Source: Podarcis melisellensis (Eukaryota). From it: a stretch of DNA of 64,000 nucleotides. The position numbers and the translations under genes were made by a program. This document shows, in pieces, positions 5,643 to 58,650 of this stretch. Position 1 is the stretch's first letter. Every line of letters starts with the position of its first letter. A model generated the notes under the pieces. The model did no database searches. It was given only the letters and a program-made list of their open reading frames with translations, and was not told where the DNA came from. The DNA is taken from NCBI GenBank assembly GCA_964234715.1, contig OZ174282.1. One strand, written 5' to 3'.

Positions 5643-21097
<15,455 letters not shown>

Positions 21098-22058
21098 GCT
21101 CTGGCCCCACCCTCCTCACCCCACCTGGTTGGCCGAAGGAACGCTGGGCAGAGCGCTGTGACTCCAGAAATCCCCCCACTTGCACCATGGCCAGGGGAGC
21201 TGACGAGAGCAGCGGCTGCTGCAGAGCAGGAGGACTGGCCTTGCTCACCTTGATGAAGCATATCTCTTAAGACACTTGCTGGCTCGCTCTCTCTTCTCTC
21301 CTCTCCTGGCTGCTGAGCCACACTTGCCACAGAAGCCACGTTCCCCTTGTTTTGGAAGGGGGGGAGGGGAGGTGCACTGTGGCATGTGCGACTGTTTCTC
21401 CCCGCCTGCCATCTTCTCTCCTCCGGTGGGCGTGGGCGAGTGAGTGAAGCGAGTTTTGTTTCGGCTCCTTGCTAGCCGGGTTACCACCTTCAGGCACTTT
21501 TCATCCAGAGTTCATGTTGGAAATGTATTCCAAGGATGCTGGTGACCCTTTCTCCTTGGAGTTCCCTGAAGTGGGGGGCCTTTTCTACGCTTGACTGCAC
21601 ACCCCAAGGGCAGTGGCTTGAGTCTGAGAAGGGGATGGATAGGTGGACCTGCTGTTCTGGACAGAAGCTCTGCTTTGGAGGATTCAGTGGTGGAGGCAGC
21701 AACGTCAAGCCCTCTTTGGCCAGTGCCTCCCTCTCAGAAAGCATCATGATGGACGAGACTGGCTGCTCCTTCCAGCAAGTCGCTCTTCAGCGTGCCCCCA
21801 CCCCAAATCTTGGAACTCCTCTTGTCTGATCCTTGGCTGTCAGCTGTGGTAGGTGGGTAGAAAGGAAATGTGTGTTGCTTAAAGATGGAAAGGGGGGGCA
21901 CCATTTGCCTGCAGAAAGACTCATCTCAAGACTCCACTGCAAAGCTGCTTTCCCCCCTCAGCCCTTTTCATTTCCTGAGTCTGTCAGAGTCCTGGATTCC
22001 ATTTGAATTCGTTCTCCTCCTGGGACGTTTGTGTTGTATCTGTAATATTGGCACTGAA

Positions 22059-22064
22059 AATAAA
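22059..22064 (+). terminator. Probable AP1G1 polyadenylation signal
   Basis: AATAAA about 960 nt after the stop codon, preceded by U-rich sequence containing TGTA motifs. Confidence 0.6.
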
Positions 22065-22549
22065 GACCATGCGGTTTAATGAGACCTTTCCTGCTTTTAG
22101 TAGCTGGTTTTGCAGCTCCTTGCATAGATGTTGAGCAGAGGACATTCCTGATTTTGAAGGCCAAGATTCCAAAGTATGACAACTCCCTAAGAGAGATGTT
22201 TTCAGGGCAGAAGTCAGTTGGTTAGGGGGGCATGTGTAGGATTCCAGGAGAAGGGGAAACACTTTAGAGTTCCCATCTATGATTGGCTAAAGTTCCTAAA
22301 GCTCATTGCCAGCCTGTTTGCCTTACAGAAACAGAAGGTGTGTCTGCACCCACTGTTGGGTTGCGTGACGGGAGAGGGGGAGCCAGGCAGAAGCACTTCA
22401 AGAGCCACAGAAAGTCCTCTAGACATACACTATCCTAGCAAATGATTCGCTGCTGAGGTCCTGTTGACTGGAGCTGTGGTCAGCTGCCTCTCTCATCTAC
22501 CCCCCAGTGAGACTTGATGTGTGTCCAGCTGGCAGTGCTGCTTTCATGA

Positions 22550-22634
22550 AGGACAGGATGAAATTGAGGCAGTGGGGAATGGGGCTTTGTGCTCTCACAG
22601 AGGACAGGATGAAATTAGGGCAGTGGGGAATGGG
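22550..22634 (+). repeat. Tandem duplication, 51-bp period
   Basis: aggacaggatgaaatt(ga/ag)ggcagtggggaatggg at 22550 and 22601. Confidence 0.85.
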
Positions 22635-23205
22635 ATTCCTGTGATTCTCCAGCCAACAATTATTATGCAAAGCTCACCAGCTGGATTGTTGGAGGTGGAG
22701 CTTGTGGAGCCCAAACAAGATTCCGAAGAAGTCTGCTCTTCATCAGCACAGCCAAAAGAGCCTTGGGGATCCCCGAAGACTAAGAAATGTATTTGGTTTG
22801 ACCTTCCTCTTCCTCATAGGATGAGCAGAGTTGGGAGTATGGCAAGACACAGATGGCAGCACCGAGGACTCTTTTCCTGTTGCAATCTGAACCTGTAAGA
22901 TGATGGCTTCTGTCCCCCCCCTTACCCCCTCCCCCACAACTAATGATGGCAGGTCAGACAGCTGGGAGTTAGGGGTTGGCAATTCCTTTCGTCTTGCACA
23001 AACAATTATCCCTTCAGGGGACACAGAGTTGAAGTAAGGTCACCTTTCCTGCAAGGAGCTCAAAGTAGTACTGGAGGGTATCATCCCCCCCCCAATGTCC
23101 TCAGAGCAACTATGAAGGAAAGGATAAGACTTTGGAGTAACTGTCCAAAGTTAAGTCATGGTTGTAGTGGAGATTTCAGCCCAGATTCTAGTCCAACCCT
23201 TTAAC

Positions 23206-23694
23206 CTGTAGGTTTTCAATCTTTTTGGGTCCATGGCTCCTTTGACCAACTACATTCTTTCTGTGGCACCCCTGTAGGGCTAAGAAGCCCAATTATGTCA
23301 CCCCTTGCCTGCAGAGCTGGCAGCCTCTCACCCTTTTTTGAATACCCTCCCTTGTGGAGTGCTCCCTCAGCCTCCTCTCTTCTCCCCTCTCCTTGGGAGT
23401 CCTCTGGCAGCTGCAGCTACCACCTCTGGTCTCTGAGCTGCCCCCCCCATAAGTGCTGCCTCACCCTGCCCCACAAGGGCCTGGGAAGTATGTCCTAGCT
23501 AGCCCCAGAGGCAGCATTCACCTGGGGAGCTGCTGCAACAAACAGCTGTGCAAGGCTTTGGGAGGCAAAAACGCAAGAGGGCATCAGAGGAGGGAGGGAA
23601 GGAAAGAGGGAATGGGGCCATTGTTGCCCACGGCACCCCTTACCATCATTCAAGGCACCCCATGGTGCCACAGCACACTGGTTGAAAACCACTG
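23206..23694. mobile_element. hAT-type non-autonomous element
   Basis: Imperfect TIRs (...ggttttcaa / ttgaaaaccactg) flanked by a ctttaac duplication. Confidence 0.6.
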
Positions 23695-24853
23695 CTTTAA
23701 CTACTCCACCATCTCCTTCCCTTGTAAGAGGCAGCCAGGAGCTCTGATGACTGTGCTGGAAATGAGATATGGCCCACCTGTGAACTCTACAGCTGCCTTT
23801 ATCATGGGCTACGCTGTCTGAAGCAATTGAACCTGTGGCCATCTAGGTGTTGAGGATGATGGGAGCTGGGAGTTGAGCATCCCCGCCCCTCAACTGAAGG
23901 ATCTTTTTACACAGTGGTCCATCTTCCTCTCCCTCCATTTCCCACACTGTAAGAAGGTCCAGACTTATTGTGAAGGGAGAGCCTATGTGGAATAACTTAA
24001 CTATGTTGCTCTTTTGTTAACACAGGCTGGTACCTAAACTCCAGTCTAATTTGAGGTGTTGCACGTTGAGTATAGGATACCTCTATGCCTGCAGGAGGCA
24101 GGGTACAAATAGGTTGAAAAACACAATTCCTACAATAATTGTGCTTTCTGGCCCTTAAAGTAGGTATAGCAGAGGGTGGCAGTCCTACTGGGTTGGGTAT
24201 TGCTCAAAAAATTGTCACATTAAAGCAATGGCCTTCCAGATGTTGCTGTACTAGAATCATCATCCTTGACCATTTAGCATGTTGCCTGGGGCTGATGGGC
24301 AAACTACATGTGGAGGGCCCGTTTCCCAGCTCTTTCTTCAAAGGTTTCTCAAATCTCGCCTTCCTTTCTGAGGGGTGGGCGTGGGACTAAGCTACAGAAA
24401 AAGTTTTATTGGACAAATGTTTTTGGATATGCAATATTGTCCTTTGGGGACCATAGTAACTGCCAGACTTTGGGAGACAGCCTTCTATGAGCTGTTGAGA
24501 GAATGTTGGTGTAATGTGTCAAAAAAGCTCTAGAGTTTCAAGGAAGAGAGTACTAAATGCTCAGTTAAATAGGACCTCAGGGAACGTAGATGTTCCAAGG
24601 TGTTGCAGTTCTTCTGTGTGTATTGCTGGAAATGCAGTTAAATGCACCCCTTGGAAATGAGCTGGCTTTTGCTTGGAGAATGAGTTCCCTCTTCACCTCA
24701 TCACTGCACATCACTGTCAGGTGTTTTGTGGGGGGGGGGAGAGATGTTTCTCTACATTGAGGCGGTAAAATGCAGCAAACCCAAAGCAAGGAAGTCCAAG
24801 ATCTCTAGTGTCTTTTGACATATGCATTTAAAGTGAATTACCAAGGTAGCGAT

Positions 24854-24859
24854 TTTATT
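24854..24859 (-). terminator. Probable MARVELD3 polyadenylation signal
   Basis: tttatt on + (AATAAA on -), about 590 nt past the MARVELD3 stop, in an AU-rich UTR-like stretch. Confidence 0.5.
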
Positions 24860-25445
24860 GTTGTACAAAAGTACTATATATTCCATAATGAAAACAATTT
24901 GAAACAAGACTGTACAGAACATCAAGTAGAAGCATTTGCCTTCAAGGCAAATGTGTAACTTCCTCATCAAGAAAGCAGCTCAATGAGGTGAATGGAAGAA
25001 GGAATGAAAAACGTTTTCTCTGGCATTGTAAGAAGGGAACTGGAGTTTTTTCTGGGGGTACCAACAAGATGGCACTTTGCCCCAAGGCATATATTGAAAG
25101 TCTCTGGTCAGCGGCCTCAATCTAAAGGCATGATCTGAAAGGAAAAAGGAATGCGGAGGGAAGAAAGCAAGTGCTGGTTGGTGAAGGGACCAAGTTGGTC
25201 TTCTTGCCATTACAGGTGACGTTCTATATTAAAGAGGAGCAGGGAGTAGTCTTGTTAGACTTTGCATCAGTATGTATGATGGGAAAGAAATGGGAGCTTG
25301 GAGAATGTTTACAAAACACTGAAGGTAGGGTTTAGACAGAAAGTGATCACTGCCACCACTGTACATGGTTCAAAGGCACTGTTTAGCTTGGCTTAATAGG
25401 CTGCTCCATCCTTCTCTCCCTTCAACTCAGGCAGCAGAGGCCAAG

Positions 25446-27342
25446 CTAGGGCTCATAGCTGTGTGATGATGGTTTTCCTTGGAGGGTCCGGACAATCTTG
25501 AACCCACGGACAGCCAACACAACGGCAACAGCGAAGGCCACAATGGCTGCCGCAGCAAAGAAGCCCACAGCGATCTCTGCTCCATGCAAACTGCAGCCAA
25601 AGCCCCTGTAGCCTTTGCTCTGGTAGAGGTTCTCTCGCTCTTTGCACAGGGAGGAGGCATAGATCTCATGAAGGCGATGGTAGTAGAAGTACAAAGCTGG
25701 CACAAGACCAATTGCAATGGTCACATCCAGAATGGCCTCCGCTATCAGCCACGCTGGGCAACGCCAGGGCACTCGGAAGAGACTAGCCACAATTTGGAAG
25801 CAGGCAAAGGCCATCAGCGCCCCTCCAACTGCCATGGCCACCTGGGCCGGTGGCACCTTGAGTTGGTGGAACTGGGCATCCAACTGCTGTGCCTTCTCCC
25901 CGTCAGCTCCACTGAGGCCGCTGTAGGCCCCGCCGTATTGGTAGTAGTAAATGCTTCCCAGACTGAAAAGACCAGTGTAGCCACCTGTCGAATTGTAGGA
26001 GACTGAGCTGCAGATGACAATCAGCATGCAGAGGAGGAGCTGGAGCTGTTGGCAGCAGGCTAAGAAGAAGCAAGGGCAGAGGGGTGCTGTTAGTGCCATT
26101 TCTCTAGTGCTGTGGGGCCCTCAGCCTGTGTGGAAAATGGAGAAATGGGGAAGGCACTTGGCCCCTCCAGGTCCACTCATAGAGGTCAGCTTTGTGGGTA
26201 GATTGGATCCCAAAACTTACTGGGGTTAAGGGAGCATATCTGAGCAGGCAGCGACTATCCTTCCTTCCCTGTTTCTACCAGGGCATCTTCTGCCCCAATG
26301 CCACATTGAAAGACTTTTCATTCCTGGGGTAGTGACCTCAGGATAGGGAACCCCAGGCATCAAATATTGTTTCCTGGGTTCCTCTACATGGCTTTTGGGA
26401 CTTCCCCAGGCCATGCCCCATGCAAGCCTCACCTCACGCCCCTGCAGTGTTTTACCTGCTGCAAGAATGCCCCCTTGAATTCTGATAATTTGTCTTGCTC
26501 CCCTGGTGGAGACACAGGGAGAAAGGGATGTGTGAATAAATTAACATTTGTTGCCCCACCCACACTGGCCATATGGCCCCTGTAAAGTTGACTAGAATGG
26601 AATATGGCCTTTGGGCTGAAAAAGTTTATTCACCCCTCTTTTCTGCCGGGAGGAAACTGGGGTGACCTGGCAGCCTCGTGGGTGCCACCCCACTCCCTGG
26701 AGGGAGCTTGTGCTGACCACAGAGGCCTGAGGATTGACGGCTGAGCAGCACTCACTCACTGCACCCCTTGCCAGCAAGCTGTGGGGCCACAGGCCTCCCC
26801 TCGCGACTTTTGGGCAGCCTGCGAAGAGGGGGTGGCAGCGTCTGGCTGGCAAGAACCCCGTCCCCGCGAGGCAACAGCCCTTTTGCCCGCCCTATCTGGG
26901 GAAGCTGCCAGTGGCTTCACCCACACCGAGCTTGCCAGCGGGCAGCGGCAGTGGAGGAGGAGGAGCTACAAACGCAACCCCCCCCCCATCGCAGCCCGAG
27001 CGCCTCATTCCACGAGGGGAAGGGGGCGTGTCGTCGACATCGTACCGCCCTGACCCACCCCATCTTGGGCCAGTAGGGACATCTAACCCGGCCCGGGCCC
27101 TCACCTCTGGCCGTGCACAGGGCGCGACATAGCGGTTTGTCCAGAAGGCCGCCTCCGCCTCGGGCCTCGGCAGGGGCGTCCAAAGAGGCCAGTGTGGTGC
27201 CTCGGGAGGGAGGGGGGCGGTGCTGCTGCTGGTGCTGCTGCTGCTGTCGCCACGGCCACGGCTGCTCTCCTACCGCCACCACCGCCGGCCGGTCGTGACG
27301 CCAGTCCCGCGGCTTCCCGGGTCTCCTCCCGGCGTCCGCCAT
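25446..27342 (-). CDS. MARVELD3: MARVEL domain-containing protein 3 (tight junction), 283 aa
   Basis: Exon 27342-27105 (gccATGg; MADAGRRP...[15 protein letters not shown]; donor gtga) splices in phase 1 to exon 26059-25446 (ACCQ...[13 protein letters not shown]...[11 protein letters not shown]...[11 protein letters not shown]...[13 protein letters not shown]...). The second exon encodes the four-TM MARVEL domain of the MARVELD3 'ACCQ' isoform. Confidence 0.93.
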
Positions 27343-27800
27343 GGCTCATAGCCCTGGCGCGCAGGGAGGTCTGGGTGTGGCGTCCCAGGTGAGCGCGGTG
27401 GCGCCGCCTCCTGGGCGGAGATTGGCCGGGGCTGGTGTAGGTGGGAGGCAGGTGTCCATCTCGCCTAGGAGCCGCCGCCCGACAGAGGGGGCTGGTCGCT
27501 GCCGGCGCTTGCCGAGGGGCGCTTCTCCAGCAGCCGTCGAGGAAGTCAGGGCGGGTCTGGAAAGGGCCAAGGCAGTCCCTGGACAAACCGCTATTGCTGC
27601 CCGTCCAGGCCCAATGTTCGGTGGTCCTGGTGGCCGTTGGCCTTCCTGGTCCCAACACAAGATGGCTTTTTTAAGGATGTAGCGGGAAAAGATGTCCAAG
27701 GGCGCCAGGGCTTCTCCGCCATAGGTGCGCCCCTCCCTCCCCCGCCCGACTCGGCTGCTCGCCCATTTCCCCAACCAAGCACTGCCCCACGAAGCAGCGG
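26800..27800. promoter_or_regulatory. CpG island / MARVELD3 promoter with CCAAT box, GC box and E2-boxes
   Basis: Most CpG-dense segment of the window. ATTGG at 27421-27425, GGGCGG near 27413, CAGGTG at 27386-27391 and 27449-27454. Confidence 0.75.
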
Positions 27801-28281
27801 TCTCTTGGCCATACCTGACTCTGGTAACAATCCAGGATTAGAGGGAAAGGAGAGAACTGGAGATCCTTCTCAGCACCCTGATGGTGGCACTGCCCTTTGC
27901 AGCCTTGGATGGTCTCCCTCACTGGCTTTGTGTTGATTCTGAGCATCAGGGGTGCAGAACTTCCTCATTCTTGTGGGACTGCACAGAAACCACAGGACAG
28001 GAAGGAATAGAACCACTGCCACTCAGTGCTTGTCCATCCATGGCTCGCCCTCTGCACATCCAGTTGAGCAGGACTACAAAAAGAACCTAAGCCCATGGGA
28101 AGGGCGTGGCTGCTGCCAGCTAAAGCAGAGGCTAGATGGTTCTCTGTTCTGACGGTATTCATTCATTCATTCATTCATTCACCTGTTCAGCTAAATGCAG
28201 GAGGCAGGGATGAGGAACCTACAGCCCACTACAAAATCCCTGTCACCATCAGGCATGCTGGCCAGAGAAGGCTGATAGGAA

Positions 28282-28491
28282 CAGTGGCGTAGCGTGGGTT
28301 GTCAGCACCCGGGGCAAGGCAAGTAATTTGCACCCCCTAACCCGTGGATTTGCGCCCCCTAACTCATGGATTTGCGCCCCCTAACTCATGGATTTGCGCA
28401 CCCTAACTCATGGATTTGCGCACCCTAACCCTAACCCCCATAGGTTGCGCCCGGTGCGGCCCCCCCCCACACCCCCCACGCTACGCCACTG
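28282..28491 (+). mobile_element. hAT MITE with internal 22-bp CCCTAA-containing repeats
   Basis: TIRs cagtggcgtagcgtggg / cccacgctacgccactg; 8-bp TSD gataggaa/gatatgaa. Confidence 0.85.
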
Positions 28492-31400
28492 GATATGAAC
28501 TGGAGTCCATCTTGACACCAGAGAAGCCCAGCAGATGGATCAGGCTAAGGTGAGCCCTCTAGCCCAGCATCTTGTTTCCAACAATGACCAGTCAGACACC
28601 ACTGAGAGTCCCACAAGCAGGATCAGGATGTTGCCCACCCACAGCAGCTCAGATTTGGCCTCTGGACATGGAGGCTTAATTCAGTGCTCATGGGTATTTG
28701 CAGTTGCTAGACTTCTTCTCCTCCATGACTTCATTTTATGATCCTGTTTAAGCTGTCTGTCTGCAAAAAAAATGCAGTTACTTTTGGTACCTTCATTATT
28801 TTGAGCGTGGAACAATTACTCATTTGCTCTACCCAAAAGTAACAAAGGGAAGGGATTTACTTTCTCTCTGTCTTCTCTTACACAAACAAAACCCGCTAAT
28901 CTGGGCAATATAACTGTGTCCCATGATTTCAGAAGCTGATTTCAGAAAAAAGTTACAGTCTTTGTATCCCAGGGGTTCTCACCAAATGCAGCTGGAAAGC
29001 AACCTAGAAAGCAACTGAAGCCCATCCAAGGAGGAGACCTTTTCTGCGTTCTCTCCTCCACCTGGCTGCCACCTTCACCACCTTCCTCCTCTGCTTTCCA
29101 GCTGGAATTTCAACCAGAGGCTCTCCCGAGAGATTCTCATCCCCAGGTACCATTATCTTGGCTGAAGGCACCTTGTATCTCAAGGGTAGGCAAGAGCAGA
29201 GAGCATTGTGCCACTATGGCTTGATGGGAGGAACCTTTCACTTACTGTCTTCTTTATATTTCAAGTGGATGCCATGCCAAAGGCCTGCCTCCTCTCCGTG
29301 GCCTGAAGTTCCATGATGCCTTCATGGTGAGGGTGAGGCAAGCATGGGCTCAGGTGTGTGTGAGTTGGCCATTGGTATCTGGGTTCTGAGGGCTTTGGGG
29401 AAATGCTAACCTAGTGGCCAGCCAGTGCTGCCGCCTCCCCCCCCCACTGTGGCATTTTTCTAGCCAGATGGTGTCACTCAGGTGAAGCTGGTGAGGTTTG
29501 GCTCTGATACATTTCTCCCTTAGCTCTGAACCCTTCATTGAATGATTTTGATGAGGGAGGAAGAGGGGTTCTTTTGCATTTGGGTACTAGATTTTGGGTA
29601 CTAGCATTTTGTGGAGGCCTCCTCCATAGCACTTTGTGGTCACTGATTCAGCATCTTAAGAAATGCTCTTTGTATTTCTGCTCAGGGGCATTTTGTCCAT
29701 CTAGGTATCTCTTGGAGACTTGTGGGACCGAAGTACTTTAAGCAGCATTTCTAGAGGCAGAACTTCTGCTTTGCACAATGAGAAGGTCCAAGTGGAATGG
29801 TGGAGGCTGCTCCATTAGGGTGAATGGAGTGCAACCCTACCAACCTCACTCTGCCCTCAGCCAGCCCCACCTGGACTTGTGGGTGGGTGGTGAATATGGG
29901 GCTTTAACCGTTTTGTCCCCTGTATAGACTTGATTAAGATGGTGTATTTGCATACACACATGCTTAAGCCAGCAGTCTGCATGCCTGTGTTTGGGTAGGG
30001 GAACTTCCAAGGCCCAAATCCAAATTGGAACCATAGCAGGGAGCAGACAGATAAAGTTGCTCTACCCTGACACCATGGTCATGTTTTGGATTGTGGCCCC
30101 CAGCCTGGCAACGTGTAGAAAAAAAAAACTCCTTCATTTAAGAGCACAGATTCTGTGATAAAATAATTACTGGTATCCTGTTGGAACACCATCACCATCA
30201 CCTGTTGGAACACCATCACTGCTAGCTGGCAGTGGTGTACTGATTACCATCTAGGTTGCAAAATGTACTCTGACTACTATAAAATTAAGAGCCAGGGAAA
30301 AAAGGAGGGGGCTGTGTGTGAATGGGATGTGCTTTTGCTCTATTATGTTTGAAGTGTATAGGCACAAGTTTATATGGAGGGTCCATGTCCCCTTTGTTTC
30401 TAAGAGAAGTTGTACTTAAGCATAAGGGTTTTTTTTAATGCAATACTGTATGTTAAGAAACCTGCGTTTTCACATGTATTCTATATTACCATTTTTGTAT
30501 TGAATTGTGGTGGCCTATGGCTTTGAACAAGAAAGTGATACTTTAGTCGGACCCTCAGGGCAGCCTGGAGCCAAAGTTATGAATCACATGCTCTGGACAA
30601 ACAAAGCTGTGTTGTCCCTCCCTCTGGGCCTTGCTAGGGATTGCTGCTGGGATTTTCCATGAAACTGTAAGAGGGAAGGTGGAAACCGGTAAAACCAAAG
30701 CACAGTGTATTTTGCAGTTATCTGGATCCAAAAAGACAAAGCCAGAAGGAACTTGTGTTCTGCATAGATGGCATCCTTGCATCTGATTTTAGGCAGTGGG
30801 AGGAGGCTGGGCAGTAGTGCCACGTGGCAAGGATGTTAGGACATATTTGTAGCAATGTCATTGTGGGAAGCTCCCTGCAAGATTTGCTGTTCCAAACTTG
30901 AATGATACTGAACCATAAAAACAAACATGATTTGTGAAACTCCTCCTCAGACTGAACTCTCTGGGAAGCGTTGTCTGCCCTTGGTCTCCATTCTCAGCTG
31001 GTGCCCCCCACACTCATTCCTCCAGGCTGCCACTTAACAGACACATTCCCATTTCCTATCATTGCATCTTCCATAACTCTTTATGAAATAAAATATTCTC
31101 TTGCATTCAAATAAGCCCCTTCCCATCTCTGCCAAGGTTGTCACAAAATGTCATTAGTGCATTGTGCATGGGAATGGGGGTGTCTAGTATTTTATCTGAA
31201 ACTGCTCGACTTCAGTGTTTGATTACACAACCTCTGGAGATACTTTTGTTCATTCTGTGGGTTCTTAAGATACAGTACATTAGTTCTCGCTGGTTGTAAC
31301 AAGCAGCATTTTCAGCCACTGTGAATGGGATGTTTTGCTTTAACATTACTTCCTGTAGGCTGAGCAAAATCATTAAAACATCAGCAAACATGTTTATAGC

Positions 31401-32312
31401 AGAATGCTCTCCTAATTAGTCATGGTTCCTTTCACTTCAGTGTCCTTTCATGTGAATTTGGCGACTCTTTCAGTAGCAAGCAGGTGAAGGGAGGGCAGCA
31501 GTCAGCCTGTTTAAAGGGCATCTTCTTAGATTTCCATGACCTGCCCTAGTGTGAGGTGGGGTCAGTAAGGTGCATGTCCATGAAAGGGGCAGTAAGCCTG
31601 CCAATCTTACCATGGAACTGGGGTGGAGAGAGAGAGACTTAATTTATCTCTACAGACACTATAAACCTAATGGGGGAACAAGAGCTCTTGGGAGTGTTTA
31701 TGCTTAGAGTCCTTCTGCCTTATGCTCTGCCTGCACATACATACAAATAAACAAATTGTGTATCCCAAAGACACCACAAGCCTTCACACAGCAGCCTTCA
31801 TTCCAAAGAAACCAAACCCATGGTATGTGTTGGGACCCCTGAAACTTTACCGCTTGGAGATTGGGTTGCATATAACAACACTTCCTAGAATCTGCAGAAC
31901 TTTCTGAAATTCCACAAGTTTTGATTTTGAGGTAGGCAATTGGCACAATGTTGTTGTAACAACATCAGCTTCCTTTGAGTCCATCAGCTTCTATCATATT
32001 TTCCCATCTTTTTAATGTATTCATTTATTGGTATTGGTATTGGTATTATAAGGTTGCAGGGCAAGTAAGGAAGGCACAAAAATAATGGTTGGTATTTGAT
32101 GCTAGTTCCACTCTGAGCAGACCCACTGAAGCTAATGGTCATAACTAACTTAAATTCATTCAAGGTGATGGAAGGTCATGTGAGGAAGACCTGCTTGGTG
32201 GTGGCTATCAAGTTCAGGAACACACTTCCTGGGAATTCAGCTACCACCAACATCACCCCAACTTCTTTCATCTGCTTTGCATGTAGAATGTCCCAGGTTC
32301 AATTCCTTATAG

Positions 32313-32448
32313 CAGGCTTCCTCAACCTTGGCCCTCCAGATGTTCTGAGAATATAATTCGCATCATCTCTGACCACTGGTCCTGCTAGCTAGGGATCATG
32401 GGAGTTGTAGGCCAAAAACATCTGGAGGGCCGAGATTGAGGAAGCCTG
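32313..32448. mobile_element. hAT MITE inserted in a Squam3-like SINE
   Basis: TIRs caggcttcctcaa / ttgaggaagcctg; 8-bp TSD ccttatag/ccttacag. Confidence 0.85.
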
Positions 32449-32460
32449 CCTTACAGCATC

Positions 32461-33086
32461 GACTCAGGAGAGTATACATGCAGAACTGCAAAAAATGCTA
32501 AATATCTCTTTCAATAAAAAACCAGAGGCCTACCTCCTGGGAATAACAGATTTGGATATTCCACAAAAGAGGAAGGGTATCTTTTTATATGCGACGACGG
32601 CAGCAAGAGTTTTGATCGCAGCAAAATGGAAGAGTAATGAAATCCCCTCTATACAAGATTGGATCCAAAAGCTGACAGAATATGCCGAATTAGATGGTTT
32701 ATCAGAAAAAATAAAGAATAAATCAAAACAGGAATTTGTTTCAAAATGGGAGGTTTTCAAAGAAAATCTGAAAAATAAATATAGTAGTTTAAATTCTGTT
32801 GCAGCATTCGAGGAACTTCAGTAATAGTTGCAAGGTAGATATAAGAAATTAGATTTATTGAGAATGTTTAATTATGATAAAGGTGTGTATTGGCAATAAG
32901 TAATATGAATTTGAAATATGGAATACACGGGAAGTTGTGTCTTTAGTGTTAAGACCAATAGATGTTTTATTGTTTGCTAAGAAAATTATGTGTCTATGGT
33001 TATTTTTGTAATTTGTGTGTAATTTGATATTTGTGTTTTTTTTCTTTTTTCTTGTTGTATAAATAAAAAACTTTATTAAAAAAAAG
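32461..33086 (+). mobile_element. 5'-truncated L1/Tx1-clade LINE (ORF2 C-terminus plus 3' UTR)
   Basis: Open frame ...FLYATTAARVLIAAKWKSNEIPSIQDW..., AT-rich UTR, AATAAA with an A-rich tail, and a perfect 21-bp TSD ggaagcctgccttacagcatc (32440-32460, 33087-33107). Confidence 0.9.
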
Positions 33087-36000
33087 GGAAGCCTGCCTTA
33101 CAGCATCACCAGGTAGGAGTAGGAGAGAACCTCCCTTCCTGAAACTTGGTGAGCCGTTGCTGCCAGTAGCTGCAGGCAGTATTGAGCTAGGTAGACCAAT
33201 GGTCTGACTCTCAGGCAGCTTCCCATGTTCCAATGACGAGTGATAATATTTCTCTTTCATTGGGTACTTGCTTAGAACACCTGTTTCGTTTTGTTCTCCT
33301 TTCTGTGATTTTTGCTGGTGTTTATACTGCTAGCATTAGGTATTCCTTTTTGTGTGTGTATTTGTTTGCTCCCCCAGACTTACCATTTTTGGTGCTGAAA
33401 TAGCAGCGGATGCTTCTTCTAATACCCAAATGTTTGACTGCAGTCCTGTAAGATGGTTGCTGGTGCTTGGGAAGGGGAGCAGGTACAAAAGACAAGGCTT
33501 TCAGCTGCAGCAATACAGAAGGATCCCAGTTGCTGGTTCTTTCAAATCATGGCACTTTGCTTTTTCTAGCAGCCCCTTGAACTGCCTGAATGTTCCTTTG
33601 CAGTTTGGCATCCAGTGGAATGCAGCGTCATGAGCCAATAACTCTTTCTGTGCTGTTGTGATTGCTGTTGTCATGTCTGTAATAAACTTTGCTAGATCCT
33701 GGCCATTCCTAGAAATCTTTGTACATCAACCTTATTCTTTGGACCAGGCATTCCAATGCTGGCTTTGATTTCAGTTGCATCAGGTATTAGGCCATCTTTG
33801 GTTAACCTATGTCCTCAGGATTTAATTTCTGACATGACAAATCTGCACTTTTCATTCTGTTTCAGGTTCCTCTCCCAATCCCTGTCTGGAATTGGCTTCA
33901 GGCATTCTTACTGATGTTTACCTACTATGATGTTGTCAGTTCAACATATGACGCCATCATACAGGGGGCCATCATACAGGGGGCCTCTTCAGTCATTACC
34001 ATTAAGTGGCTCTTGAAAACATCTCTTGTTTTGTTTGGCCTTTTATTGACTTTCTATGTGAGTTAGTAATGTAGTTGCTGCTGCTTTACTGTATTTAGTG
34101 GTGACTGGTTTAAACGAAATGCTCCTTTTAAAATATTTTATTGTTTGCTAGCTTTTGTAATGTTAATGTGTAAATGTATTAAAGTAAATAAAATGGCAAC
34201 TGGATCAGCCTTTGGTACCTATATGGAGCTGAAGCGATACCAAATGGTAATTAAGAGAAAATTAATCGCTAATGATCCAAATGTCCTAAATGGGAAGCAT
34301 GTGAGGCAGATCCTGCAAGAAGGAAGTTTCTGATTAGTAGCCTTGAAGAGCTGCAATGACACTTGGCTGTTCTGCAATCAACAGCATGAGCCTGTGAGTT
34401 TCTGAGGAAAGTACACATCCCTCAATCTGAAATCTCTGTTGTGACATGGGAAATTTGTGTTTTCAAAATTATACACACAGTGTGCCTAATTCAAGGAATG
34501 TGTTTAGCTGCACCCAAGCAACCGGCTGTGCGGTTTTATCCCTGACTATGTGGAATACAATTGTTTTTGCTATACTATGTGGAGCCGGAGGAGTGGCTGG
34601 GAACCTGAGGTGGTTGGTGCCTGCCCTGTTCCTGGCAATTGCGTAAGAATGACACCTGAAAAAGTGGGTGACATATGTGAAAAGACGCCCCTTGAAGTCA
34701 TCCGAGAGCCTTCCTGTTGTTTGCTTGGCACCTGGCTGCTCCAAGGCCATGGAGGTGAAGAGGGCAGAGGCCGCTACACAACAGGCCATGCAAGAGGATG
34801 AGAATGTGAAGTCACTAACCAAACATTGGTGATGAAATTAGCCAATATTGACTTGGCTTCAAAGGAGGGGGAGGGCGGGAGGGGGGGTGAAAGCTCTCCA
34901 CAAATGGGAGAAAGTGGTTCCTGCTGCCTTCCTTTCCCCTCCCTTCCCATTGCACAACGGCTTGCTGTGGAGAGTCTCATAACACAAGTCATGGTAACCT
35001 TCCCCACCCATCAAGGCATGGAGTTCATTGTCCTCCATGGGGGGCCCTGTGCAGATCTTTGGTGCTGGATAGAAATAAGGTCTCTTACTGGTGCAGCTTG
35101 ACGGCAGATAGAGGAGGGAGTTAAATCCAGCTAAAAGAGAGTGAAACCCAAGCACTGCAAAGGGGAGAGAGGAATGGGGGACCACCACCCCGCGCCCTAG
35201 TCTATGAAGTGGCATCTCTTGATAAACAAAAGGCTGGAGAGGCTGCTGTTGGATCTGCGAGCAGGAACCTCCCTAGAGCCAGTCCTCATGTTTGGGGAGG
35301 AAGGAGGCAATGGAGGCAAACCCCCAGAAAGTGAACGAAACAGCCAGAGGATGCTGTGGTGGCTGAAAGCCTGATGGGGAGGGGGGAATTCCCCAAGGTA
35401 GGCCTTGCAAAGAGCCTCTTAGACTGCAGCCCATTTGCCCCTTCAAGAGCAGAGAGGCAGCACGAGCCACACCCACTTGCCCAACTTCTGCTTCCTGCAG
35501 CAGCATCACCAGGGCCCCTGCCAAGCTGTAGGTGCCTTCCTGGTAGGCAGAAGGGGAAGGGGAGAGTTTGTGGATGCTGCCGGCTGTGCTGTGCGTAAAA
35601 AAAACCTCCAAGGATGGAGGAGACTGGATGGAGGATGGAGCCTGGGTAGGAAGGTGCCAGAGAGTCTGCTGCTGGCTTTGCACTTCTGGGGCCGAAGGAA
35701 AGGGGAGCATCTGGGATGGGTTACTGGAAGAGCTGCTGATGCATTCTGTGTGCATTGCGGGGAATCTTTCTCCCACGGTGCTAAATAGACCCCTCACCAT
35801 TCTCTGTGCTCTGTCTAGGGATTCCTCCCCACAAAAGAGGTTTCAGGTGGTGTTGCCCCCATAGCATGCCTGTCGCCCAGCCTTTCTGAGGGGAGCACTT
35901 TCTGGAGGCTTCTTGGGCAGCACCTGTGAGGTCCCAAATGTTTAGCAGTCCTCCCTCCCGCCTGCAGACTGCCAGCCTTACGTAACTCAGGCTATCAGTT

Positions 36001-37140
36001 GATGCAAAGTTGAACCAAAGGGCTCCTGTCGACTGAACCTTGCAAGGTGACATGCAGAGTCATTGCTTGCATCAACTGGGAGGGAGGGAGGGAGGGTGCC
36101 TTGCCAGGCACATTATGGTGGGGGAGAAATGTCTCAAGGCCAGCCTCGCTCTGCTGCAGCTACAGCCTGCAGAACTGGGCAGATCTTGGCACCAGCAACG
36201 CTTCAGGGCAGGCAATGGGGAAAGGAGTCACAGAGCCTGATGCTTGAGGGTGAGCCTGATGGGGCCCAAGAATTGGCCTTGAGGGACAGATGTTGACCTG
36301 GCACTGCCAGTCATCCTGTTCTCTGTCCTCAATGTTGTTCTGGCTGTGGAAGAGACCTTGTGCCACTTGCAAAGCTGGGAGGGGGGCTCCTTGGCACAGA
36401 AACACTATTGGTGCCAGCTAGAGAAGGCAAAGCCTGTAATTAAGGGTGCCTTGCAATGCCAGCAACTATACCTTGACCAGCTATACTGACTGGTGGGCAT
36501 TGTTTGCTTATGGGTGTTTTCTGAGCCAGGCTGTTCAGAAGCTACCAATTTCTTTCTGTCCCTCTAGGCCCGAGGTAGATACACATCCATTAGCTGCTTA
36601 AGCTAGCTCTCCACCACTTCTCCAGCAATGAGATCTGCCTCTTTGCTGGAGATTAATGGGGTCCTCGCCAGGCAGGTACCCTTTGATCTTCAGCTGCTGG
36701 GGGTGTGGTGGGGCTGGCTGCCTGTGGTTGGAGGAGGGCGGTAGGACTGTTGTTGCTATCGGGACACCTCCTCTTCGCTTGCTTGCGTGCGTAGATGTGG
36801 GTGGGGGGGAACATTTGGGACTCATTAGTGCTTTGCAACGTGGAGCTGGAGATGATGGGATGAATGCAGCTGATTGCATCAGGCCAAGACTGCCAGGCTA
36901 AGCCTTGGACCACTGAGGCACTGAGGAAATTAACACACCCCTCTCCACTGTGGGCACCCAGCCTCTGCAGGCCCAATATTCTCCAGCAATGAGGGTTGCA
37001 ATCTGGCTGCCCCTGGTACTGGAGGGGTGGCATACTCACCTGACCTGCCAAGGCCAGACTGGGAGGGCCCCTACCCCAATTTTGTGCTCGCACTTCACAA
37101 ACGGGATCAGTGAGCTGTGGGGGTGTGGATGGCAGTCGAA

Positions 37141-37475
37141 GGGTTAACATTCAGGCAGTGTTTGCTCCAGATGTTTGGAGCTAGACTATTCCTGAGTTGG
37201 TGTGTCTGTGTGTCCTGATGGGAGGGGGGGAGTGCAGCCCTCCCTATCAGCCAATCATTAAAGGACTCCAAGCTGACACCCAGTTCTTGGCTGGGAATCT
37301 GCAATGGGGCCCTGTTGTGCTCCTGCCCGCCTATCCCACATAAAAGGGCCCAGGGAAGGCTCTGATCTCCCCATTCAGCAGCTCCAGAGCAGGCAGAGCG
37401 GCCTGCCAGGTTCATCAGAGGTGCCTCGTTCGCCCACCTTTGCCACCACATAAAGCTGCAGCTGCTGCCACATAG
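37141..37475 (+). promoter_or_regulatory. TAT: Probable TAT promoter and non-coding exon 1
   Basis: HNF1-like ggttaacattca near 37142, FOXA-like tgtttgct at 37159-37166, CCAAT at 37251-37255, TATA-like CATAAAA at 37339-37345, Inr-like ccattca about 30 nt later, and a strong donor TAG|gtaaga after 37475. The ATG exon begins at an acceptor (39501), so an upstream exon is required. Confidence 0.65.
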
Positions 37476-38444
37476 GTAAGAGGCTCCTTGAGGTGCCACC
37501 TGTAAGCCTGACGGGGTCTGAGCTGGTGTCCCCGGTCCCCGGGATGGAACAAGCACCGCATGAAAGGCTGCAACAAAGTGGCTGAGGCAGAACTCGGGTG
37601 CTTTTCCTGGGACACCCCTGACCCAGCATGTACACCCTCCGGAGACCAGGAGTGACCTCAGCAGACACAACAGAGAACCTGGAGGTGGACAATTGCAAAA
37701 GGGCTGGCTTGGCCTCTTGGGCCAGCAGAGGCTCTGGAACAAGAAACCGAGGAATTCTGGTGTCGGCGGAGAGTGGTTTTGACGTCTGTGTAGCTTGTTC
37801 CAAGAGGAGCCAGGACTTGAGGTGGCTCGGGGTGGGGGGTGCAGGCTGGCTTTATCTTGGGAGCCAGGTGGCACCACACCTGCAATCAAATTTACTGCCA
37901 TTATGATTATTGTTTCATTCTGGGAGTACAGAGAGGAAATGACTTTTCAGCCAGTGTGAAGAGGTTCTTTGGCCTTTTGCGGCTGGCACCGGAGACTTCT
38001 TAGTTGTGCCCCAGGCTCTCGTGTGCCCTTCTTGCCCAGGGAGCCACCAGCTGCCTCTCACTCACCTTGCTGCTTCCTTTGCCACATCCCACCAGCTTTG
38101 CCTTCTCAGCTCTCTCCAGCTGTGCCAGATTCTTTGGAGCAAGACAGGGGGACGGAGGGAGGGAAGGGGGCAATGCAAGTCATATTTCTCGCAAGGCAAG
38201 AGCAGGGCCCCTTCCCATCTTTCTCTCCTGGTCCAATGTTTGTTGGGTTTCCCCTCAGTGTTTTACAAGGACAGTGGCTGGCTCAGCCCTTGGATCTTGC
38301 CCATAAGATCCCTTGGTGGTTATTCTCAGGTTCCGGTGACACTGTTTGGGCTTCTCAAATTGCATTTGAAATTCCTGACAAATTATTCCCCTTTGTTCTT
38401 AAATCTGTTTCTAAAATTAATCAGTTTGACTTAAAAAATAAATA

Positions 38445-38686
38445 CAGTTGTACCTTGGGTTACATACGCTTCAGGTTACATACGCTTCAGGTTACAGACT
38501 CCGCTCACGTAGAAATAGTGCTTCAGGTTAAGAACTTTGCTTCAGGATGAGAACAGAAATCGTGCTCCAGTGGTGCGGTGGCAGCGGGAGGCCCCATTAG
38601 CTATAGTGGTGCTTCAGGTTAAGATCAGTTTCAGGTTAAGTACGGACCTCTGGAACGAATTAAGTACTTAACCCGAGGTACCACTG
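38445..38686. mobile_element. Tc1/mariner-type MITE in TAT intron 1
   Basis: TIRs cagttgtaccttgggtta / taacccgaggtaccactg, TA flanks, internal cttcaggtta repeats. Confidence 0.85.
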
Positions 38687-39260
38687 TAAATCATGGCTTA
38701 AAGACAAGCAGCCTAAAACACTTTACAAGATTTTTCATAGTAGACCAAAATTCATTTATACACCCCTTTTTTGAGTTCCAACACTGCTTCAACAATACTC
38801 TCCCACTCATCTTAACAGCAACCCTGAAAGGTAGGTTGGGAGAGAATGGCTTCCCTGAGGTCACCCAGTGAGTTTATACTGGAGATGAACTCCAAAGTGA
38901 AGAATGGGGGTGTCCTCCCACCTCCAGCACTTAGGCACAACTAGACAAGTATGTTTTGAAAGAGAACTCAGTCAAAGCCTGCCCAACACACACACACACA
39001 GTGGTGTCTTGTCATTCACATGCCAAGTACATGCTGTCCCTACCACTGTGGGAAGGAGGGCATAGAGGGAAAACACATTTTCCTCATCCAAGTTGGCCTC
39101 TGGCCCAACTGCAGTTCTTGCCCCACTCCCCGCACATCTCCACCCCCTTTTACCGACTTCCCTGCTGTGAGGCTTGATCAGGGTCCTGCTAGGGGGGTGT
39201 GGCAGCTGACTTGGCTCCTCCTGAACTAAGAGCTGCCTGCTCAGGACTGGTGCTTCCACC

Positions 39261-39391
39261 CATGGACGTAGCTTGGATTTTTGTTGGGGAGGGGCAGAAT
39301 CGACATGATTGGTCAGTTCAGAATTTCTATTGTTTTACTTGACCTGGGGGGGGGCAGCTCCCCCCACCGCCGCCCCTTAGCTATGCCCATG
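39261..39391. mobile_element. Short hAT-like MITE
   Basis: catggacgtagct / agctatgcccatg termini; near-TSD cttccacc/tctccacc. Confidence 0.55.
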
Positions 39392-39502
39392 TCTCCACCC
39401 AACTCTGCCATGGCAGTGGCCTTGAGCAGATAGCAGCCTTGAAGAGAGGATTGTGTAATCAGGGATGCGGGCCCACCTGCTCTTTGCACTTCCTTTCCAG
39501 AG

Positions 39503-41289
39503 ATGGAATCCTACCTGATCCATGTGAATGGCAAGACGTCCCCGCCCTCCATCCTCGATGTCCACGTCAGCCTCAATGGCGGGAAGGGCCCTTCTCCGGG
39601 CAAGGGGAAAAACCGCAAGGCCCACTGGGCCGTCAGGGCTTCCGAAATGTCCAAGAGGACCTTCAACCCCATCCGAGCCATTGTGGACAGCATGAAGGTG
39701 GAGCCCAACCACCAGAAGCCCCTGATCTCTCTGTCCATAGGTAAGCAGGTGGGCTATGGAGGGACCATGAGGTGGGGGCTCCTGCCAATGCCCCACCCTC
39801 AAGTGACATGGATTCCCCTCATGTTTCCCCACAGGGGACCCAACTGTGTTTGGGAACCTCCCAACAGATGATGAGGTCATCCAAGCGATGAAGGAGTCCC
39901 TGGATTCTGGGCAGTATAATGGCTATGCCCCCTCAGTAGGTAAGTCCTGGGAGACGCTTTCAATGTATGCAGCCCCTATTTTGCTTTTGCTGCAAAAGTC
40001 TAACATGCCAACTCTTCTGGGATTCCTCTACACAGGTTACTTGTCTTGCCGGGAGGTGGTCGCAGGCTACTACACCTGCCCAGAAGCCCCCTTGGAAGCC
40101 CAGGTAACTGACTGCTGCATGCATTGCCATCTGACCTTGATGCTTGATGGGGATGTTGCGAAAATTAGCTTTTGCAAACCCTGGCCAGCACCTCTGCAAC
40201 TCACTGTACTGGAACTGGAGCTTGCCCAGAAAGGATCCTGGGCCTGGAATTTTTATTAGGAGCCCAGGAAGCTGCTTTATACTGAGTCAGACAACTGGTC
40301 CACCTAGCTTGGTATTGTCCACACTGACAGGCAACATCGTCTCTCCAGGGCTTCAGGCAGGGAGTCTCTCCCAGCCTAAGTTGATGCCACTGGGGATTCA
40401 ACCTGGGACCTTCTGTATGCTAGCAGGGACCCCCCTTCATTCCAGGCTCCTGGCCAGGAACCTTTCCCTCCCCTTCTGTGCTGCTTCTGGGCTAGTCTTT
40501 CCTGGTGGTTGCTACCCGCCAGGCTCACGGCTGCCTGCTCTGTTTCCTCTTCCTTTGCAGGACGTGATCCTGACAAGCGGCTGCAGTCAGGCCATTGAGC
40601 TGGCCCTGGCTGTGTTGGCCAACCCTGGGCAGAACATCCTGGTGCCACGGCCTGGTTTCTCTCTCTACAAAACCCTGGCTCAGTCCCTGGGCATCGAGGT
40701 CAAATTCTACAACCTCTTGGTAAGCTGGGGCAGGAGGTGGTGCAGCATACCCTCCCCACTGCCTGCAGAGAGGCATGGCACAAGGAGGAAGACAAGCAGG
40801 AGCTCCCTTGCAGGGCTCTGCCTGCCTCTCCACAGAGCTCAGCTATAAGAAGGGCTGCCTGTGGACCCGGGTTCAAGGCCTGGGGACCTGTTCTCCATCT
40901 CCCCTTCTTTGGACTGGGCCCAAACCCAGGCTGGGAGGAGTTGCAGGGCTCTTGGAAGAGAAAAGGGAGGTCAGTATCCTGACCAGTTGACAGTTGCTCC
41001 AGCCGCCATCCCTTTTCACCTGCCCAGGACCTCTGGCCCACCCTGACCCCAGCAGGAAGCCTGGTTCATGGGCACCAGGCTGAGGTCCTGAAGTGGGGGC
41101 ATTCCTCACCTCTTCCTCCCTTTTCTTCTCCCTGCAGCCAGAGAAATCGTGGGAAATTGACCTGAAGCAAATGGAGTCACTGGTGGATGACAAGACAGCT
41201 TGCTTGATTGTGAACAACCCATCTAACCCCTGTGGCTCTGTTTTCAGCAAAAGCCACCTCCAGAAGATCCTGGCAGGTGAGGATCCCCC

Positions 41290-41322
<33 letters not shown>

Positions 41323-44300
41323 TGTTGTTGTTTTTTTCCCTATCCCAGGCCTTGCTTTGGGGAAGAAAGAAGGAAACAGAGTCTGGGGGCTGACTAGATT
41401 TCTTTCTGTCTGTCTGTCTTTTCCTGCTCAGTTGCCTCCAGGCAGTGTGTCCCCATCTTGGCTGATGAGATCTACGCTGACATGGTGAGTGAGGCAGAAG
41501 CACCCCTGGTCCCTCGGAAGGCCAAGCACAGCAGCTGGAACCCTTCTTCCCAGGAGAAGCCCCCTCCCACCTTCTGACACATGGCTGGGAAAGCAGGGGG
41601 TGGGGTGGGTCTGCCTGAGGTGGCTTGGTCTTCTTCCCAATCACAGCCAGCTGCACTAGCATCCCCCTTACCTGCTTTACACGCCCATTAGGTGTTTCCA
41701 TCACTACTTACTCTGGTATTCCTCCTTCTGCACTCCCCCCCCCACTAGGTGTTTGAAGACTGCAAATACGAGTCCCTTGCAAAGCTCAGCACCAACGTGC
41801 CTATCCTCTCCTGTGGAGGCCTCGCCAAGCGGTGGCTGGTGCCTGGCTGGAGAATGGGCTGGATTCTCATACATGATCGCAGGGAGATCTTTGGGAAGGA
41901 GGTAAGTTGGCAGAACTCGGTGCTGCCCTGACTTTCTGCACCCGGTCCAGGAGCTGGTGTGATGGAAGAAAAGAGTTCATGCCCCTCACCACTTCACAGC
42001 CACCCTCTGAGCCTGATTCATGTAGCCTTTGTGCCCCAATGCCCACTGTCTGTGCTAGGATGTCAATGAGGCAGTGTCCCCTGCCTCCTGGGTCTGGTCA
42101 GTGAAAGGCTGCCCAAGATGCCCCCTACTCCAAATGAGCTCTGAACAGGAACAAGTTGGTTTGAGTAGCAGCTGCTTCTTGGGAGGGCCAGGAGATCCCT
42201 CCCCCACTTCCTGTGCCCTCTACACTGGTGCGAGTTCTGCACAGGTTCCCTCCATTGTACCCATGGTAGGATGCAGACTCTCTTTCTCACCTTCCCAGCT
42301 CTGCCTTTGGTTTGGGGGCACACTGAGCCACAAGAGGGCTCTTGCTGTGACTGCGGAATTTCACTCTCTTAGATCAACTTGGGGATCAGGTAGTGTCCCT
42401 CCCTACTGAGCTTTCTCTCCTCTGTGCATCTTTCAGATCAGAGACGGCCTCCTGAGGCTGAGCCAGAGGATCCTGGGCCCCTGCACAGTTGTCCAGGGAG
42501 CTCTCAGCCGCATCCTTCGCCAGACGTCCCCGGAATTCTACCACAACACCCTCAGCTTTCTCAAGGTACATCCCTTCTCTTTGAAAGGAAAGGGAGAAAA
42601 GAAATAGGAACAACAAACACATAAGCAAAACCAGGACTAGACCAAAAGAGCTATTAAAAACAGAGTGGGTGGGGAGCACCAGGGAGGGCTCATGCCTCAC
42701 AAAGCCCCTCTTGCTTATCTCTCCCAACTCCTTGGAGGGCAACAGGGATGCTCCCCAGCCCATAAACACCGCTTGGGTGGTGGGAGTGGACAATGTGGCT
42801 CCTCTCACCCTGGGAAGCTGCACTGGCCTGGAGGGGGCAAGGAGGTGCTCAGCACAGCCCCCACAGCCCCTCCCTGTTTTGCCCTTTGGAAATGATTGGC
42901 TCATTTAATAATCCAGCTTAGCATGAATTGGTCAGTGAAACTGTTACAGTTAAATGAATGTGCATATTAATGAAATCTCTGCATAGATTCCCTTTTGAGA
43001 TTCCATTGATATGCTAGTTCAGAAGGATGCACCTCAGCTCAATGGTAGAGCAATCTGCTTTGCATGCAGAAAGTCTGAGGTTCTACACCTCCAGGCAGAG
43101 CTTGGTGAGACTCTCTGTCTAAAACCCTGCAGGGCTGCTGCCTGTCAGTGCAGTCAATACTGAGCTGGATGGGCCAATGGTATAAGGCAGTTTCCTATGC
43201 TCTTGTGAATGTTAAGCGTCCCTATTTTATTTTCATCCAATGTAGTAATATATACTCTGAACTATTCCCCACCACATAGCACATCAGAGCCAAACACTGT
43301 GTCAAAAGCTTTGCTCTTTTCAGCACTGGGAAGACCCAATATTCATGGCAGTGAGCATGGAAAGAAATGACAGCTGTGGGATGGGGGGGCGCTCTGGAAT
43401 GCACACACCAGTGCAAGTGTGGGCACGGCTGGCAAACAGGTCACTTTTCTGTGGTCCCATCAGTTCCCAGGGTGGGCAGGTTTTAATTCATCAACAATGT
43501 GCCCTTTTAAGCCTTTATCCATGGTGAACGTGTTGGGTGGTCCCAGTGGGGACCCTGGGATGCTTGTGCCTGCAATCTGACCTGACTCCTCCTCCTTCCA
43601 TTTGCAGTCCAATGCTGACCTCTGCTATGATGCCCTTTCCACTGTCTGCGGCTTGCAGCCTGTCCGGCCGTCGGGGGCCATGTACCTCATGGTGAGTGGC
43701 TCCCTGTCACTTGCAGAGCTTTGACCCTGCAATGGGCAAATGCCAGGCAGATCATCCCTAACTCTGTGTTTCCTCCTCTTCCTTGCTGCAGGTGGGCATT
43801 CAGATGGAACACTTTCCAGAGTTTGAGAATGATGTGGAGTTCACAGAGAGGCTCATTGCTGAGCAGTCCGTCTTCTGTCTGCCGGCCACGGTGAGCATCT
43901 TTATTCGCAAGAGAGTTATGGGAGGCCCTGGGAGTTACTGGAGCCGCGGGAGCTGTACTTGGCAGAGAAGAGGTATTCAGCTCGGCTCCACTTTCCTTGG
44001 GCCTCTGCTGCTCAGCTGGCCCCCACCTGCCTTTCCTCTCCTTTAGCTAGTCTTTCTTCTAGATGCTTGCGATTCGCAAGGCACTCCCACCATGCATGGC
44101 ATGAAGGGGCATTGCTTGCATTTCACAATCTCACTGCCAGCTGGCTCAGCGCCCACACCCCTGGCTGCTGAACAATGGCACCTTGTGAGGTGCCGTGAGG
44201 CTCCCTTCCCCAGATCCCCAGCCGCCTGCTCCCTCCTGCTACATGGGCCTTGGAGAATGGCCATTGCACTTGCCGGCAGCACCATTCCTTGAGACAAGCC

Positions 44301-57453: not shown

Positions 57454-58650
57454 ATGCTGAAGCTGACCAGGTTAATAGTTCTTGTGATCTTGGCGATACA
57501 GGTCATTGCCCTCACCTTCTGGTTTCAGCTTCATGGCAGGAAATGTCCCCTGGCGCAGGAGCCATCCCAGGTGCACATTCTCATCCTCTCCTCCTGGAGG
57601 TCAGGGTCTTCTTTCGTCGGGCAGATCTTCAGCCAACACCCTGATGCCTTCTACATGATGGAGCCAGCCTGGCACATCTGGGCAACCATGTACCAAAACA
57701 GCGCCAAGGTCCTGCACATGGCAGTGCGGGACCTCATCCGGTCAGTCTTCAAGTGCGACATGTCAGTCTTCGATGCCTACCTTCCACAGAAGAGAAATGT
57801 GTCAGAACTCTTCCAGTGGGAGGTCAGCCGGGCCCTGTGTTCCCCACCAGTGTGCAACTCCTTCCAGCGCAGTGACTTCATCTCCAAGCATGCCTGCAAG
57901 ATGCTCTGTAGGAAATCCCCCTTCAGCAAAGTCGAAGAGGCCTGCAGGTCTTACAGCCATGTTGTCCTGAAGGTGGTCCGGATCTTTGACCTCAAGGTGC
58001 TCTATCCTCTCCTTAATGACCCCTCCCTGAACCTCAAAATCATCCACCTGGTCCGTGACCCCAGAGCCGTTTTCCACTCTCGCAAGAACACAGAAGGTAG
58101 CCTGGCCCGGGACACGAGGATTGTGCTGAGACACAAGAGGAATGCAATGGATACCGAGCCCTACGCTGCCATGCGGGAGATTTGCAAAAGTCATGTTGAG
58201 ATTTACACTGAAGGCAGGCAGGCCCTTCCCAGCACCTTCCAAGATCGCTACCTCTTGGTGCGGTATGAAGATATTGCCAGCAATCCCTTGGCTAAAGCTG
58301 CTCAGCTCTACAGTTTTGCAGGACTGCCCTTCTCTCCTAACCTTCAGTCCTGGGTGCACAACATCACCCATGGGCAGGGCCTTGGCAAGCAGGCCTTTGA
58401 TGTTGACTCCAGGGATGCAGTGAATGTGTCACAGGCTTGGAGGAAGGCCCTTCCTTATCTCCAAATAGCAAAGCTGCAAGAGGTCTGTAAGGATGCCTTG
58501 AAGCTACTGGGCTATCCGCTAGTTAGGTCTGAGGAAGAGCAGAAGAATATGGCCTCAGACCTCTTTTATGCCCAAACGCCTCTTGTCAATGAGGAAAGCA
58601 AAAGGAGCCTGGAAGCATCACCTGCAATTTATTGGACTTGGACTAGATGA
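57454..58650 (+). CDS. CHST4: Carbohydrate sulfotransferase 4 (GlcNAc-6-O-sulfotransferase 2), 398 aa
   Basis: Single coding exon with an acceptor at 57440 and gccATG. Type II TM anchor, 5'-PSB motif SSWRSGSSFVGQ, 3'-PB motif VRDPRAVFHSR, plus VRYED and WVHNIT. CHST4/5/6 family; adjacency to TAT favours CHST4. Confidence 0.9.
   Translation: MLKLTRLIVLVILAIQVIALTFWFQLHGRKCPLAQEPSQVHILILSSWRSGSSFVGQIFSQHPDAFYMMEPAWHIWATMYQNSAKVLHMAVRDLIRSVFKCDMSVFDAYLPQKRNVSELFQWEVSRALCSPPVCNSFQRSDFISKHACKMLCRKSPFSKVEEACRSYSHVVLKVVRIFDLKVLYPLLNDPSLNLKIIHLVRDPRAVFHSRKNTEGSLARDTRIVLRHKRNAMDTEPYAAMREICKSHVEIYTEGRQALPSTFQDRYLLVRYEDIASNPLAKAAQLYSFAGLPFSPNLQSWVHNITHGQGLGKQAFDVDSRDAVNVSQAWRKALPYLQIAKLQEVCKDALKLLGYPLVRSEEEQKNMASDLFYAQTPLVNEESKRSLEASPAIYWTWTR

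Follow-up and report, generated by a model that had tools for sequence, protein, structure and literature searches.

An old segmental deletion at the place where the 3' ends of AP1G1 and MARVELD3 face each other appears to have removed the whole PHLPP2 gene, an explanation to which we assign a probability of roughly 0.9. The sequence analyzed is a 64-kb stretch of DNA from the lacertid Podarcis melisellensis, here called the window. No PHLPP2 exon survives in the gap between the two flanking genes or elsewhere in the window. The same slot is empty in four other squamates, and it is occupied in chicken, crocodile and the turtle Emys orbicularis.

That squamates have lost PHLPP2 is already known. 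Husremovic et al. (PNAS 2025, PMC12002173) examined the PHLPP paralogues across gnathostomes and reported that PHLPP2 was lost in Squamata, being absent from snakes and lizards, and that it was further lost twice in turtles, and also in caecilians, with AKT and PKC retained (Fig. 7E of that report). Their conclusion was reached by phylogenomic profiling, and synteny is not mentioned in the main text. Our observations agree with theirs in the gene that is lost and the clade that has lost it. The difference, and the new part of this work, is support at the level of the locus: the ancestral slot itself is empty and free of relics in five squamate families, and the corresponding controls are occupied.

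Genes that flank the gap

AP1G1 lies on the plus strand at positions 5706 to 22080 of the window, measured from its first coding exon to its probable poly(A) site. Exons of AP1G1 and MARVELD3 were searched singly, as separate pieces. The coding start exon of AP1G1, which begins at 5706, matches the Pfam family Adaptin_N, and the last coding exon, which is closed by the stop codon at 21095-21097, matches Alpha_adaptinC2, the gamma-adaptin ear. The gene also carries the snoRNA SNORD71 in an intron (15572-15657, plus strand; Rfam RF00576, 64.3 bits with the gathering score at 34). Thus, all three features by which AP1G1 is recognized are present, namely Adaptin_N at the start, the ear at the end and the intronic snoRNA. 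The human AP1G1 gene also hosts SNORD71, and the pairing of this snoRNA with its host appears to be conserved in lizards. The 3' UTR of AP1G1 extends from 21098 to 22080 on the plus strand, as defined by the stop codon and an AATAAA signal at 22059-22064. It shares 74-84% nucleotide identity with the corresponding DNA of Rhineura, Elgaria, Tiliqua and Phrynocephalus, and this conservation ends at about 22079-22196.

MARVELD3 lies on the opposite strand. Its first coding exon (27103-27342, minus strand) was located by a tblastn search with residues 1-80 of the Podarcis muralis protein, to which it is 97.5% identical. The last coding exon, which encodes the MARVEL domain, occupies 25446-26021 on the minus strand, with coding sequence from 26021 to 25449 followed by the stop codon at 25446-25448. 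This exon is 97% identical to its Podarcis muralis counterpart; when scored alone, it matches the Pfam MARVEL model at E = 3.3e-07 and 30.9 bits, slightly below the cut-off of 32.8. Overall, identity across the MARVELD3 exons is 97-98% with Podarcis muralis and 91-94% with Zootoca vivipara. Among the best 120 homologues listed, the first of which has an E-value of 1.6e-127, were MARVELD3 proteins of lizards, turtles, crocodilians, birds and mammals. No other MARVEL exon was found in positions 21100-40000.

The 3' UTR of MARVELD3 is assigned to 24854-25445 on the minus strand, on the basis of the complement of AATAAA at 24854-24859. A further complement of a poly(A) signal lies beyond it, at 24405-24410. 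The region of this 3' UTR resembles intergenic DNA of Rhineura at 24534-25033 and at 25193-25398. Because the first of these conserved stretches runs from 25033 past 24854 down to 24534, the transcript may instead end at the 24405-24410 signal, in which case the 3' UTR would be about 450 nucleotides longer than first assumed.

A first-pass annotation of the window had proposed that AP1G1 and MARVELD3 end tail to tail, separated by about 2.8 kb between their poly(A) signals. This geometry is borne out: the signals are 2.79 kb apart, and the stop codons are separated by 4.35 kb. The intergenic gap, which corresponds to the empty PHLPP2 slot, comprises positions 22081-24853. It has a GC content of 0.49 and a CpG observed/expected ratio of 0.11. 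The DNA of the gap is unique, in that no repeat is common to it and the rest of the window, and no notable tandem repeat was found within it. The sole repeat inside the gap is a 45-nucleotide direct repeat in two copies at 22539-22634, which are 51 nucleotides apart and 87% identical. Alignment of the gap with its Rhineura counterpart gives colinear patches, and one short block is also conserved with Elgaria.

Beyond MARVELD3, the next conserved neighbor is TAT (tyrosine aminotransferase), whose exons span 39503-44046 on the plus strand and were recognized by TAT_ubiq and Aminotran_1_2 matches in ORF pieces. This span also includes a borderline match to the tRNA model (43028-43098, plus strand; 30.1 bits, with the gathering score at 29), perhaps a pseudogene or a SINE derived from a tRNA. 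Farther along is an intact single-exon ORF of 398 amino acids that encodes a CHST4/5/6-like carbohydrate sulfotransferase (57454-58650, plus strand; Sulfotransfer_1 and Sulfotransfer_3). Between MARVELD3 and TAT, the region 34400-38600 is GC rich (0.50-0.56) and contains long ORFs on both strands, for example at 37107-37901 (minus strand, 264 amino acids) and 35273-35800 (minus strand, 175 amino acids); these ORFs have no Pfam match. By eye, a run of ORFs at 50369-52422 and 32495-32824 (both plus strand) resembles fragments of the reverse transcriptase/ORF2 of non-LTR retrotransposons.

Searches for PHLPP2 in the window

The statement in the first-pass annotation that the gap holds no PH, LRR or PP2C exon was evaluated with domain models and with homology searches. 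For the former, positions 21900-25100 were translated in all six frames, and the 89 resulting stop-free pieces of at least 24 amino acids were compared with Pfam at E<=1. PH, LRR, PP2C and MARVEL were all absent from the results for this interval, which consisted of only five families at chance level. The statement therefore stands.

Homology searches with protein queries led to the same outcome. The 3' exons of chicken and crocodile PHLPP2, which encode the PP2C and C-terminal portions, were defined by their mutual conservation and used in tblastn searches. No meaningful match was obtained in the window or in the intergenic regions of four squamates, and the best score of any PHLPP query in the intergenic stretch (E = 0.031) was no better than chance. 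In the local BLAST databases, the window was represented without positions 20991-21099. When a full-length teleost PHLPP2 protein (from Caranx) and three PHLPP1 proteins were compared with the window by tblastn, only two matches appeared, both at chance level (E = 0.065 and 0.62). As a positive control, the same full-length queries were compared with the chicken and crocodile loci, where each recovers five to seven exons, with E-values down to 1e-110. At the nucleotide level, a sensitive blastn comparison of the gap with the chicken, crocodile and turtle loci revealed no similarity.

One candidate was considered and rejected. A crocodile query piece produced a match with an E-value of 4.5e-06, which probably reflects a repeat; this piece matches Heteronotia too and lacks conservation in chicken.

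The interval in other squamates and in outgroups

Comparison loci were obtained as the genomic surroundings of MARVELD3 proteins found in the homologue search. In addition to the lacertid window, the squamate loci were from Rhineura, Tiliqua, Elgaria and Phrynocephalus, so that five families are represented by independent assemblies. In all four of these additional squamates the interval is empty. The distance between the AP1G1 and MARVELD3 stop codons is 6.2 kb in Rhineura floridana, 3.2 kb in Tiliqua scincoides, 4.5 kb in Elgaria multicarinata and 3.6 kb in Phrynocephalus forsythii. In each, the gene opposite MARVELD3 encodes an adaptin of 815-821 amino acids with Adaptin_N and Alpha_adaptinC2 domains, and tblastn searches with exon pieces from the window confirmed AP1G1 exons in all four loci. 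A "MARVELD3-like" gene of the gecko Heteronotia binoei (10001-11773 of the fetched locus) lies within other large genes and has neither AP1G1 nor TAT in its vicinity; it is perhaps a duplicate copy, not the syntenic MARVELD3.

In human 16q22, the gene order is AP1G1-PHLPP2-MARVELD3-TAT. The expectation that PHLPP2 should lie between AP1G1 and MARVELD3 was made explicit in the first-pass annotation, and the position is indeed occupied in all three of the informative outgroups. In Gallus gallus, MARVELD3 is flanked on one side by TAT and on the other by an opposite-strand gene that encodes a 1445-amino-acid protein with RA_3, LRR and PP2C domains; the end of this gene is 5.5 kb from the MARVELD3 stop codon. 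An equivalent gene for a 1312-amino-acid protein ends 4.1 kb from MARVELD3 in Crocodylus porosus, and a gene for a 1300-amino-acid protein with RA_3, LRR and PP2C domains ends about 9.9 kb from it in Emys orbicularis. The gene that stands tail to tail with MARVELD3 in these three species is PHLPP2. AP1G1 exon pieces from the window had no tblastn match in the fetched chicken, crocodile and Dermochelys loci.

In Dermochelys coriacea, the 10 kb downstream of MARVELD3 (positions 15771-25770 of the fetched locus) is free of called genes and of exons of PHLPP2 or AP1G1. Because PHLPP2 of Emys is itself 9.9 kb away from MARVELD3, this stretch neither shows nor excludes one of the turtle losses described in PMC12002173.

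Apart from the missing gene, the window resembles the ancestral amniote arrangement AP1G1-PHLPP2-MARVELD3-TAT. The order of AP1G1 (with its SNORD71), MARVELD3, TAT and the CHST4-like gene is kept, and the relative orientation of MARVELD3 and TAT is the same as in the outgroups; TAT is also the neighbor of MARVELD3 in chicken, crocodile, Tiliqua and Elgaria. The window differs in that it lacks PHLPP2, and the tail-to-tail partner of MARVELD3 is consequently AP1G1 rather than PHLPP2.

Deletion, its alternatives and its meaning

The flanking genes are conserved and adjacent, no relic of PHLPP2 lies between them, the gene is present in outgroups, and the same empty slot recurs in independent squamate assemblies. 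This combination of features is expected of a segmental deletion, as is the lack of a copy elsewhere in the genome, for which we rely on PMC12002173. Because all five assemblies share the empty slot, the deletion is older than the split among lacertoids, skinks, anguids and agamids. It would have occurred in an ancestor common to at least the lacertids, amphisbaenians, skinks, anguids and agamids, and would have left approximately 3-6 kb of noncoding DNA between the stop codons, with both neighbors and their 3' UTRs intact. Other segmental deletions in squamates have been described (BMC Biol 2026, PMC13005343), and the present case is similar to them in that a whole gene has been removed and its flanking genes are left adjacent. 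It differs in that PHLPP2 does not appear in the main text of that report.

The event can be pictured more specifically as one clean excision that spared both 3' UTRs, in a slot that was possibly emptied independently in the turtles and caecilians that lack PHLPP2. We regard this extended version as unlikely. If it is true, deletions would have recurred in the AP1G1-MARVELD3 interval, and the squamate excision, as a rare genomic change, could be dated by comparison with tuatara and geckos.

The first-pass annotation left open whether PHLPP2 had been deleted or relocated. Deletion is supported by the empty slot and the absence of relics, and relocation is disfavored by the published squamate-wide absence of the gene. 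If PHLPP2 had moved, an intact or fast-evolving copy would lie elsewhere in the genome, unannotated or mislabeled. Our own searches for PHLPP2 exons covered the 64-kb window, which leaves room for such a copy, and we rely on PMC12002173 for its absence from the remainder of the genome. In a homologue search with reedfish PHLPP1 as the query, the squamate proteins among the best 120 matches listed belong to the PHLPP1 clade; the listing would also leave room for an unlisted PHLPP2, and it establishes that PHLPP1 is kept in the geckos Eublepharis and Heteronotia, the python Liasis and the cordylid Hemicordylus. A search of representative proteins with the last exon of crocodile PHLPP2 yielded full-length proteins of PHLPP1 type and, as the sole PHLPP2 cluster, one from teleosts (Caranx), with no full-length tetrapod-like PHLPP2 cluster beyond the known groups. 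Among the papers that we searched, none describes a squamate PHLPP2. Deletion is favored over relocation, because PMC12002173 reports that PHLPP2 is absent from Squamata as a whole, and we judge a moved copy to be improbable.

It is slightly more doubtful still that some functional remnant of PHLPP2, for instance a regulatory element or a noncoding transcript, persists in the gap. The short blocks that the gap shares with Rhineura, and in one case with Elgaria, could be read in this way, but blocks of this kind are expected anyway from a close relative. Moreover, the sensitive blastn comparison showed no similarity to the chicken, crocodile and turtle loci, an Rfam search yielded no match in the gap, and the low CpG ratio speaks against a promoter.

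Finally, a collapsed or mis-joined interval that conceals a PHLPP2 gene is very unlikely, to the point of being negligible, because the same collapse would not recur in five assemblies made by separate projects, and because the window contains zero N and no scaffold gap and its intergenic DNA is colinear with that of Rhineura. Of the 31-mers from positions 20600-26500, the likely source sample contains a fraction of 0.94, a sample that a different study took from the same species contains 0.63, and samples of related species contain 0.5-0.6, which agrees with genuine sequence and is not proof of contiguity. With deletion thus retained as the preferred explanation, synteny that is free of relics across five squamate families rules out an annotation or assembly error as the source of the reported absence.

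PHLPP2 has long been described as an Akt/PKC phosphatase and tumor suppressor, and the first-pass annotation accordingly presented its disappearance as the notable loss of an Akt regulator. The loss is real, but it was already published, and the premise that PHLPP2 regulates Akt is contested. Both PMC12002173 and an essay published in 2026 (PMC13358185) contend that no activity of PHLPP2 on Akt can be detected and that the protein is a pseudophosphatase. According to the same two sources, mice that lack the two PHLPP paralogues are viable, and no jawed vertebrate has lost every PHLPP gene. In squamates, the PHLPP1 paralogue would plausibly cover whatever function is common to both PHLPPs. A whole vertebrate order without PHLPP2 supports the view, already in print, that this protein is a dispensable pseudophosphatase for which PHLPP1 serves as a backup.
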